This document shows positions 8,970 through 9,874 of a DNA stretch of 13,686 nt, piece by piece (position 1 is the first letter of the stretch; every line of letters begins with the position of its first letter). The notes beneath the pieces are model-generated. The model worked only from the letters and a program-made list of their open reading frames with translations, searched no databases and was not told the DNA's origin. The translations under genes were made by a program, and so were the position numbers. Source of the DNA: Epithemia pelagica (Eukaryota; Protista; Bacillariophyta); the NCBI GenBank assembly GCA_946965045.2, contig CAMPTO020000003.1, positions 1 to 13,686 of the forward strand, written 5' to 3'.

Positions 8970-9197
8970 AAAAGAATTCTTCAACTAACCAAAAGAAGAA
9001 GAATTTCTTTAAAAAAAAATTCAAAAACTATTTCAAAAAGAATCCAATTCAGTGCGGGTAATAGTACCGAAAAACTGGTTGAAATTGCTTCAGAAATTGG
9101 TAAGACTGTTGAACACGACTTGGTCTAGGTAGTGAATCAGCAGGTTCCGCGTCACGAATAATATTTCAAGCAACAGAATGTTCTTATATAAAGACGA
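8970..9197 (+). pseudogene. Decayed middle fragment of a paralogue of the 9211-9710 accessory gene
   Basis: The frame through 9051-9116 reads SAGNSTEKLVEIASEIGKTVEH versus KAGNLTERLVNVSEFVGKAVDR in the - strand ORF. After a frameshift, 9122-9178 reads GLGSESAGSASRIIFQATE versus LVGGSEAGSALGRIGYKTTK. No start codon; the 5' boundary is uncertain. Confidence 0.75.
9185..9197 (+). repeat. Left copy of an imperfect 13-bp direct repeat (TATATAAAGACGA)
   Basis: Matches 9732-9744 (TATATCAAGACGA) at 12 of 13 positions. Confidence 0.55.
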
Positions 9198-9210
9198 GGA
9201 TACCTTTAAA

Positions 9211-9710
9211 TTAACACCCATCAGCTGCACATGCATTTCTAAATCCAACACATGTTTTACTGACAATTTTCGCGCCAACGTAAACTTTACCACTGCCCGG
9301 GAACTTCAATGTTGTGCATACTAGAGCAATCCCCTCAGATGTCGCTGCAGCAAGACAAAGACCTGTGCATAAGGCATCGCCACGAGCTAACGAGCTATAT
9401 CTTTAGTAGTTTTATAACCTATTCGACCTAGAGCAGATCCTGCTTCACTCCCACCAACTAATTCAGTACCTCGATCCACTGCCTTGCCAACGAATTCTGA
9501 AACATTGACCAATCTTTCGGTCAGATTTCCAGCTTTATAACCTGATTCTTCCGCAATTTTAATACCTTTACTAAGAATCGCATCACGAGCTGCTTCACCT
9601 GGGGTTACACCAAGGGAAGATTTTTTTCTATTTCTAATCAATTCTCTTGATTGTTTTAACATAATTTCTCCTAATTGAAGATCTAGGTTTTTACGTCCTT
9701 TACTCGACAA
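9211..9710 (-). pseudogene. Uncharacterised accessory protein gene (163 codons when restored; Gly-rich middle, Cys-rich C-terminus), frameshifted by an 8-bp duplication
   Basis: The 107-aa ORF (TTG start) stops at ...TTKDIAR*. Removing one copy of the duplicated TAGCTCGT extends it in frame by GDALCTGLCLAAATSEGIALVCTTLKFPGSGKVYVGAKIVSKTCVGFRNACAADGC to a TAA at 9213-9211. Both parts align with the flanking paralogue fragments. Confidence 0.85.
9382..9397. repeat. Exact 8-bp tandem duplication ACGAGCTA ACGAGCTA
   Basis: 9382-9389 is identical to 9390-9397. The junction creates the premature TAG at 9389-9387. Confidence 0.95.
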
Positions 9711-9731
9711 GTTTATCGAAAAAAAAAGCTA

Positions 9732-9874
9732 TATATCAAGACGACTGGTCTATGTGCTGTAGCTGGAACATGCGAGACATAGGATGTTCAACAATAAAAA
9801 GAATTTCTGTTTGTGCAAAAATTGTTAGCAAAGGCTGTATGACGTATCGGAATCTTTGCGCCGGCGATGGGTGC
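9732..9874 (+). pseudogene. Decayed C-terminal fragment of a paralogue of the 9211-9710 accessory gene
   Basis: 9744-9779 reads TGLCAVAGTCET. After a frameshift, 9785-9874 reads CSTIKRISVCAKIVSKGCMTYRNLCAGDGC, versus TGLCLAAATSEG...CTTLK...VYVGAKIVSKTCVGFRNACAADGC in the - strand gene. The last 20 residues are 14/20 identical. 9732-9744 is the right copy of the 13-bp direct repeat. Confidence 0.85.

Follow-up and report, generated by a model that had tools for sequence, protein, structure and literature searches.

Two decayed copies of one unnamed gene family, one lying inverted within the other, beside the plastid rRNA operon of the diatom Epithemia pelagica

In this study, we examined a plastid contig of the diatom Epithemia pelagica (CAMPTO020000003.1, from the 60.5-Mb assembly GCA_946965045.2) and, within it, an island at 8951-9919 that holds two broken copies of one unnamed accessory gene family. 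The entire contig of 13,686 bp is the window referred to throughout. Its gene order is psaA, trnP, the unnamed orf318, rrs, trnI, trnA, rrl and rrf, followed by the island, to the right of which rps10, tufA, rps7, rps12, rpl31 and rps9 lie on the minus strand. The island consists of a plus-strand copy in two pieces with a minus-strand copy between them; its features are given below with their evidence in brackets (HMM, hidden Markov model).

8951-9197, plus strand: left part of the plus-strand copy, comprising a lysine-rich N-terminus and the middle region (translations, tblastn, family HMM)
9185-9197, no strand: left copy of a 13-bp direct repeat, TATATAAAGACGA (repeat search)
9198-9731, minus strand: insert of 534 bp, made up of 13 bp, the minus-strand copy and 21 bp that include a run of nine A (sequence)
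9211-9710, minus strand: minus-strand copy, a full-length subfamily-B gene with one frameshift (open reading frames, tblastn, family HMM)
9382-9397, no strand: exact 8-bp tandem duplication, ACGAGCTA twice, in the minus-strand copy (sequence)
9732-9744, no strand: right copy of the 13-bp direct repeat, TATATCAAGACGA (repeat search)
9732-9919, plus strand: right part of the plus-strand copy, the cysteine-rich C-terminal half followed by a stop (translations, tblastn, family HMM)

The ATG at 8951, 48 bp past rrf, is the probable start of the plus-strand gene, and from it a lysine-rich N-terminus like that of other family members is read. Its left part is readable in three frames (8951-9058, 9030-9125 and 9113-9197, ending ...QATECS-YIKT) and its right part in two (9732-9779 and 9776-9916). 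The family HMM aligns the left part at positions 29-66 (E = 3e-4) and the right part at 112-148 (E = 5e-9), so the pieces are collinear and complementary, as the initial annotation, made from the letters of this DNA, had proposed in describing them as one split gene. Joined, they give a single high-scoring segment pair with an intact gene of a related locus, L007_B (48.6% identity over 107 aa, E = 1.6e-24; L numbers denote related loci or contigs that carry family members). Such joined readings, with X at the plus-strand frame breaks, served for alignment and trees only, and database searches used the pieces. Compared with the minus-strand copy by tblastn, the right fragment matched with E = 1e-9, the left with E = 1e-5 and the continuation of the left with E = 0.06, and comparison of the peptides by eye gave the same 10 of 20 identities that had been reported between the middle region and the minus-strand copy. 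Among the motifs of the family, TGLC, CE, YRNLC and the terminal GC are retained and the DIARGD stretch is degenerate; of 45 conserved columns 34 can be aligned, and 24 of these are kept. Three frame breaks remain after the gene is rejoined in silico.

The approximately 530 bp between the plus-strand pieces had been described as holding a near-complete copy on the minus strand, and the 534-bp insert does carry one. It encodes 147 aa when counted from the ATG at 9662 and 163 aa from the TTG at 9710. The frame running from 9710 down to 9390 closes with ...KTTKDIAR and a stop, and the cysteine-rich C-terminus resumes in a different frame, from 9381 down to 9211; the 8-bp tandem duplication disrupts the copy at the I-A-R codons of K-D-I-A-R and is seen in every one of the four genome copies as well as in the four metagenome assemblies described below. 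The copy matches the family HMM at positions 7-90 (E = 8e-22) and 88-147 (E = 2e-24), is 57-60% identical to intact genes of other taxa and has all conserved motifs (K/E-D-I-A-R-G-D, C-x-G-L-C, C-E, F/Y-R-N-x-C and the terminal Cys). Among 29 intact genes, 45 positions are conserved to 90% or more, and each of these genes retains at least 40 of them; the minus-strand copy retains only 36. It is therefore already drifting, and the 8-bp duplication is not the sole sign of decay. An intact reading frame is thus absent from both copies, the one being frameshifted and the other split and broken in frame, and neither can now yield a full-length protein.

The two copies are related at a distance. Their proteins share 37% identity, and blastn finds no similarity between them at the DNA level. 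In the last 21 codons, seven are identical, seven differ synonymously, the same number that had been counted before, and seven differ non-synonymously; half of the identical residues are encoded by different codons, and synonymous sites look saturated. Both plus-strand fragments and the minus-strand copy fall into one subfamily, with support in the Shimodaira-Hasegawa-like approximate likelihood-ratio test (SH-aLRT) of 92 in the tree of N-terminal halves and 97 in that of C-terminal halves. In the full-length tree, the plus-strand copy has as its sister an intact foreign gene, that of L039 (95/82), and the minus-strand copy is placed elsewhere. Constraining the two to one clade costs 14 log-likelihood units (p = 0.063 in the approximately unbiased test, AU). 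Because they take separate positions and a forced clade carries this cost, the copies are probably, if short of proof, neither sisters nor a local duplicate pair, in agreement with the earlier view that they are old paralogues and no local inverted duplication.

The insert splits the plus-strand gene at K-D-I-A-R, a conserved motif of the family, and exactly at both breaks stand the two copies of the 13-bp direct repeat, which are identical at 12 of 13 positions and each read Y-I-K-T in the plus frame. A match of at least 12 in 13 arose in 17 of 5000 random pairs of 45-bp windows drawn from this window (p ~0.003). When one mismatch or none is allowed, the 13-mer occurs in the window only at the two junctions, and once in ~199 kb of related loci. 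Deletion of 547 bp (9198-9744, the insert plus one repeat copy) rejoins the plus-strand gene in frame as ...FQATECSYIKTTGLCAVAGTCE..., which links ...QATECSYIKT to TGLCAVAGTCE.... The repeat has the form of a target-site duplication (TSD) of a DDE (rve) insertion, in a length that is atypical.

The arrangement does not depend on a single assembly. In four independent metagenome assemblies, the stretch 8700-10163 recurs at 100% identity, both junctions and the 8-bp duplication included. The matching contigs are one of 134.7 kb and three, 1.2-1.4 kb long, in each of which the complete island is contained; mis-assembly is thereby excluded. The window contig does differ from a metagenome contig of the same species by three 1-nt homopolymer insertions (at ~12255, 12572 and 12630), which interrupt the genes rps7 and rps12 and most likely arose as errors of long-read assembly; no such difference falls in the island. 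Homopolymer errors of this kind elsewhere in the contig, and the fact that each plus-strand fragment taken alone is short and degenerate, could lead one to see remnants of two different genes, or a chimera of assembly. We hold this to be very improbable, given that both fragments belong to one strand and one subfamily, that their HMM ranges complement each other, that they can be joined in frame with the repeat at the junctions, and that three short metagenome contigs cover the whole island without a single difference. Fragments from different subfamilies and an assembly chimera were the two outcomes that the initial annotation had set down as contradicting it, and neither was seen.

To place the island in context, it is important to know what the family is and where else it occurs. 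Subfamily B comprises helical, cysteine-rich proteins of ~145-170 aa that start with MLKK... and end with ...CAGEGC. An exhaustive profile search recovered 90 representative clusters of a family without a name; the nearest atlas clusters are all unnamed as well and are assigned to diatoms wherever a phylum is known. Pfam has no family for any member, a word search with the N-terminal piece of the minus-strand copy matched that piece only, and tblastn against the PLSDB plasmid and phage collections, from which the published diatom plasmids are absent, gave no match. An intact 130-aa paralogue elsewhere in the plastome of E. pelagica has 91 metagenome relatives, none of them named, at 43-95% identity. 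The AlphaFold model of an intact relative has three helices, with a predicted local distance difference test (pLDDT) score of 78 for the whole model and of more than 90 for its C-terminal half, and a Foldseek search of the model against the PDB returned only non-specific helical-bundle matches, all with E >1. A metal-binding or membrane-inserted helical hairpin would be in keeping with the small-residue helices and with the conservation of Cys, Asp and Glu; this is only a guess.

Elsewhere, members of the family keep company with mobile DNA. Those of subfamily A lie in introns of both classes. The 130-aa member is found inside a psbB group II intron in the own plastome (L006:1315-1707, at ~98,000 of the plastome contig) and in L007 (6001-6393), after an open reading frame (ORF) for a reverse transcriptase (RT) with HNH domain and 38 nt ahead of domain V; in L014, from another diatom, an rrl group I intron at 4717-5851, recognised by Rfam with E = 1e-8 and a score under the gathering threshold, holds a 131-aa member with a LAGLIDADG ORF immediately downstream of it, and a second, divergent family ORF (7036-7392) comes after rrf. 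Genes of subfamily B occur after rrf (L048), after ycf35 (L034), beside psbY-psaC (L049), in tandem (L029) and, frameshifted, after the atp operon (L056/L059). In eight loci, recombinase ORFs follow and seemingly also precede the family gene. The partner ORF, of 515-520 aa, has an rve (DDE integrase) domain at its N-terminal end and a tyrosine-recombinase (Phage_integrase) domain at its C-terminal end, and the pair of family gene and partner is found in the L038/L041 unit (with a partner of 519 aa) and in L030, L043, L045, L052 and L055. L038 (1-2701) has a 55-nt terminal overlap and L041 (1-3113) is a circular permutation of it; the unit is a circle or a tandem array of ~2.65 kb with two genes only. 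In L034, from another diatom, a stretch of 1.1 kb with 95% identity to this unit comes after the 3' end of ycf35, which makes L034 a plasmid piece integrated beside ycf35, a gene that also borders the inverted repeat of our window. A third subfamily (125 aa, ending ...DPSNPLC; L061:84-3049 and L062) is found on contigs of ~3.2 kb, flanked on one side by a tyrosine recombinase of 299 aa and on the other by an ORF of 490 aa that has no annotation.

Some further contigs bear on the family's range. The ends of L051 (1-1875) overlap by 122 nt, and the contig may be a circle of 1.75 kb; besides a family gene it has an ORF of 186 aa that shows a P-loop-like GNTGKS motif and is not matched by Pfam, and in P0135 a similar P-loop region appears fused to the C-terminal half of the family. 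Independent broken copies exist at L056/L059:6291, L058:1266-1383, L060:442, L027:563, L065:1193 and in L066. Their lesions are mixed (a 1-nt deletion, TGA, TAA and deletions of ~20-120 nt) and cluster just past K-D-I-A-R-G-D, at profile positions ~88-107, which may reflect a hot spot or a bias of detection.

Taken together, we consider it reasonably probable that the island preserves two relic arrivals of one accessory gene in the spacer between rrf and rps10 or ycf35, the second inserted, in inverted orientation, into the first. An older copy would have been located just downstream of rrf, in the direction of the rRNA operon. A second, distantly related copy, on a piece about the size of a gene (534 bp), would then have entered it in the opposite orientation where the most conserved motif, K/E-D-I-A-R-G-D, is encoded, and a target stretch of 13 bp would have been duplicated at both junctions, or have been common to the incoming DNA. 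The interrupted plus-strand copy may have decayed further, to its three frame breaks, while conserved positions of the inserted copy drifted and the 8-bp duplication at the same motif presumably broke it at last. We prefer an insertion because one step suffices and because it agrees with the flanking repeat and with the way the gene rejoins in frame; these two observations also support the earlier proposal that an element-borne paralogue was inserted into another, the mechanism itself being a matter of inference. As to the donor, an extrachromosomal element, which the same proposal had favoured, is the source we infer. This idea is well founded because the family occurs on a circular unit with a recombinase and a near-identical copy is integrated beside ycf35 in L034. 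The second gene could have entered by a recombinase acting in trans or by capture of plasmid DNA through microhomology during break repair, two routes that we would judge about equally likely.

Several observations weigh against this interpretation. No recombinase, as had been stated before, and no transposase is present among the ORFs of the window, and the plasmid rve-integrase protein, used as a single query, found no match in the 60.5-Mb genome. The insert has no terminal inverted repeats, the score of its ends being reached by 1566 of 2000 random pairs. The 13-mer was not found in the plasmid-like contigs, so that no conserved attachment core is shown, and a duplication of 13 bp is long for rve-type integrases by the usual lengths of their TSDs. 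At the motif the plus-strand gene is 3-5 codons short relative to the family, and the junction is therefore not perfectly clean. A search for the uninterrupted site in a sister genome, made through exact rps10 matches, returned the same species only. Finally, the AU test is only marginal, and sisterhood of the two copies is not firmly rejected by it.

Two further candidates for the origin of the insert were considered and set aside. A classical DDE transposon is disfavoured by the lack of inverted ends and of a transposase borne by the insert, by the 13-bp duplication and by the absence of the 13-mer from plasmids. For a remnant of a group I or group II intron, an Rfam scan of 8650-10250 returned a noise match only (E = 4.7) and no intron RNA signal in the island; by the same method, domain V was recovered in the psbB intron and a group I core in L014.

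The position of both lesions at one motif raises a different possibility, namely that the recombinase of the element cuts or integrates by preference in the motif region and that the element homes into its own cargo gene where this is already resident, in which case the outer 13-bp and inner 8-bp duplications would be footprints of staggered cuts. Two independent duplications do fall on homologous codons of two paralogues, lesions lie within ~10-15 codons downstream of the motif in L056/L059, L058, L060, L065 and L066, and the plasmid partner carries an rve (DDE) domain, the class that produces target duplications. We nevertheless regard this as rather improbable. Among ~45 loci there is no second nested case, the lesions elsewhere are of mixed kind (nonsense changes, a 1-nt deletion, longer deletions), as expected of ordinary decay, and detection favours the conserved core; moreover, the insert is without inverted ends, no att-like core was found in the plasmids, and replication slippage readily makes short tandem duplications. 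If it were true, we would be dealing with a cargo gene that targets itself and shuttles among integrase plasmids and the group I and group II introns of diatom plastids.

The surroundings of the island, whose landmarks are listed below, bear on a second alternative.

8781-8903, plus strand: rrf (5S rRNA), last gene of the rRNA operon and left landmark (Rfam RF00001, 52 bits)
10059-10107, no strand: stem-loop in the spacer with 19-nt arms, 95% complementary (repeat search)
10118-10163, minus strand: copy of the last 46 nt of ycf35 (limits of the inverted repeat; identity with L010, where the stretch lies inside ycf35, DUF1257)
10174-10497, minus strand: rps10, right landmark, in single-copy DNA (Pfam PF00338, E = 5.5e-26)

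The stem-loop is likely a transcript end or a processing element and stands outside the family. By comparison with other plastid contigs of the genome, the inverted repeat (IR) spans 1968-10163 of the window, so that the island is inside it and near its end; this end adjoins rps10 in one genomic setting and ycf35 in the other. At the opposite end the last 141 nt of psaA (1968-2108) are also included, and since both these and the 46 nt of ycf35 lie inside the IR, both of its borders have crept into coding sequence.

Such borders could by themselves have produced an arrangement of this kind, if two resident copies standing tail to tail where the IR meets single-copy DNA (rrf>A> <B<ycf35) were reshuffled by IR-border dynamics with no foreign insertion, either by expansion and contraction through gene conversion or by tandem duplication and deletions; the 13-bp repeat would then be microhomology from repair. 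The island is indeed 250-1200 bp from the end of an IR that has moved into ycf35 and psaA, and both resident positions have precedents in other diatoms, because family genes are found in the plus orientation after rrf (L014, L048) and in the orientation of the minus-strand copy after ycf35 (L034). That no recombinase was found points the same way. Yet a single inversion cannot give an N-terminal and middle part on the plus strand, a whole gene on the minus strand and a C-terminal part on the plus strand, so that at least three events would be needed where an insertion needs one, and the precise in-frame rejoin and the gene-sized insert also fit one event better. Both plus-strand pieces, ending at 9197 and 9919, are well inside the IR and off its border at 10163, and the gene beside ycf35 in L034 is itself an integrated plasmid piece. 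On this evidence we think reshuffling of resident copies unlikely, if the most serious of the alternatives. A pseudogene truncated by the IR border was rejected from the same coordinates of the two pieces and the border.

Insertion of one paralogue into another, the reading that we favour, can be compared with several known systems. Foreign and plasmid-derived ORFs and pseudogenes, among them serC, tyrC and anonymous ORFs, are described from diatom plastids (Ruck et al. 2014, PMC3971590; Imanian et al. 2010, PMC2873285). Like the island, they are patchy accessory ORFs, often decayed, in expanded spacers or near IR borders, and they are tied to tyrosine or serine recombinases and small plasmids; relatives of the island gene stand next to tyrosine-recombinase ORFs and on the circular contig of ~2.65 kb. 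The island differs from them in that the window is without a recombinase, the family is unnamed and a copy is nested inside a copy of the same family. For the partner of its relatives, the fusion of an rve domain and a tyrosine recombinase, a limited literature search found no description. The psaA group II intron of Thalassionema nitzschioides holds orf608 and orf123, a second small ORF besides the reverse transcriptase (PMC9044688). The psbB intron of E. pelagica and its relative are built alike, with the RT ORF followed by the 130-aa family member upstream of domain V, whereas the island has no intron RNA signal. Nested insertions with a TSD, as made by DDE/rve transposons or by integration at a shared core, have a flanking direct repeat and in-frame restoration in common with the island; here, by contrast, the insert is a cargo gene only, with neither transposase nor inverted ends and with an unusual repeat of 13 bp, and the mobilising enzyme, if any, would act in trans, none having been found in the genome with the one query used. 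Finally, the fragments of ycf1 and rps19 at the IR borders of land plants resemble the situation in that the IR end has shifted here too and includes fragments of psaA and ycf35, whereas both halves of the plus-strand gene lie inside the IR and are parted by an insert.

In conclusion, the island is a pseudogene pair, probably the relic of repeated traffic of selfish elements and no working gene, and it adds one more example to the plasmid-type foreign DNA already known from diatom plastomes. Where DNA of this sort comes from, as in the case of tyrC, has been described as uncertain (PMC3971590). The island offers a readable record of one probable insertion with both junctions kept, and thereby a concrete and datable case of foreign or selfish DNA entering diatom plastomes. 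There is also a lesson for annotation, as neither of its copies should be labelled a gene here. The more interesting part is the family itself, which is widespread and unnamed, comprises at least 90 sequence clusters and shuttles between integrase plasmids and two classes of intron.

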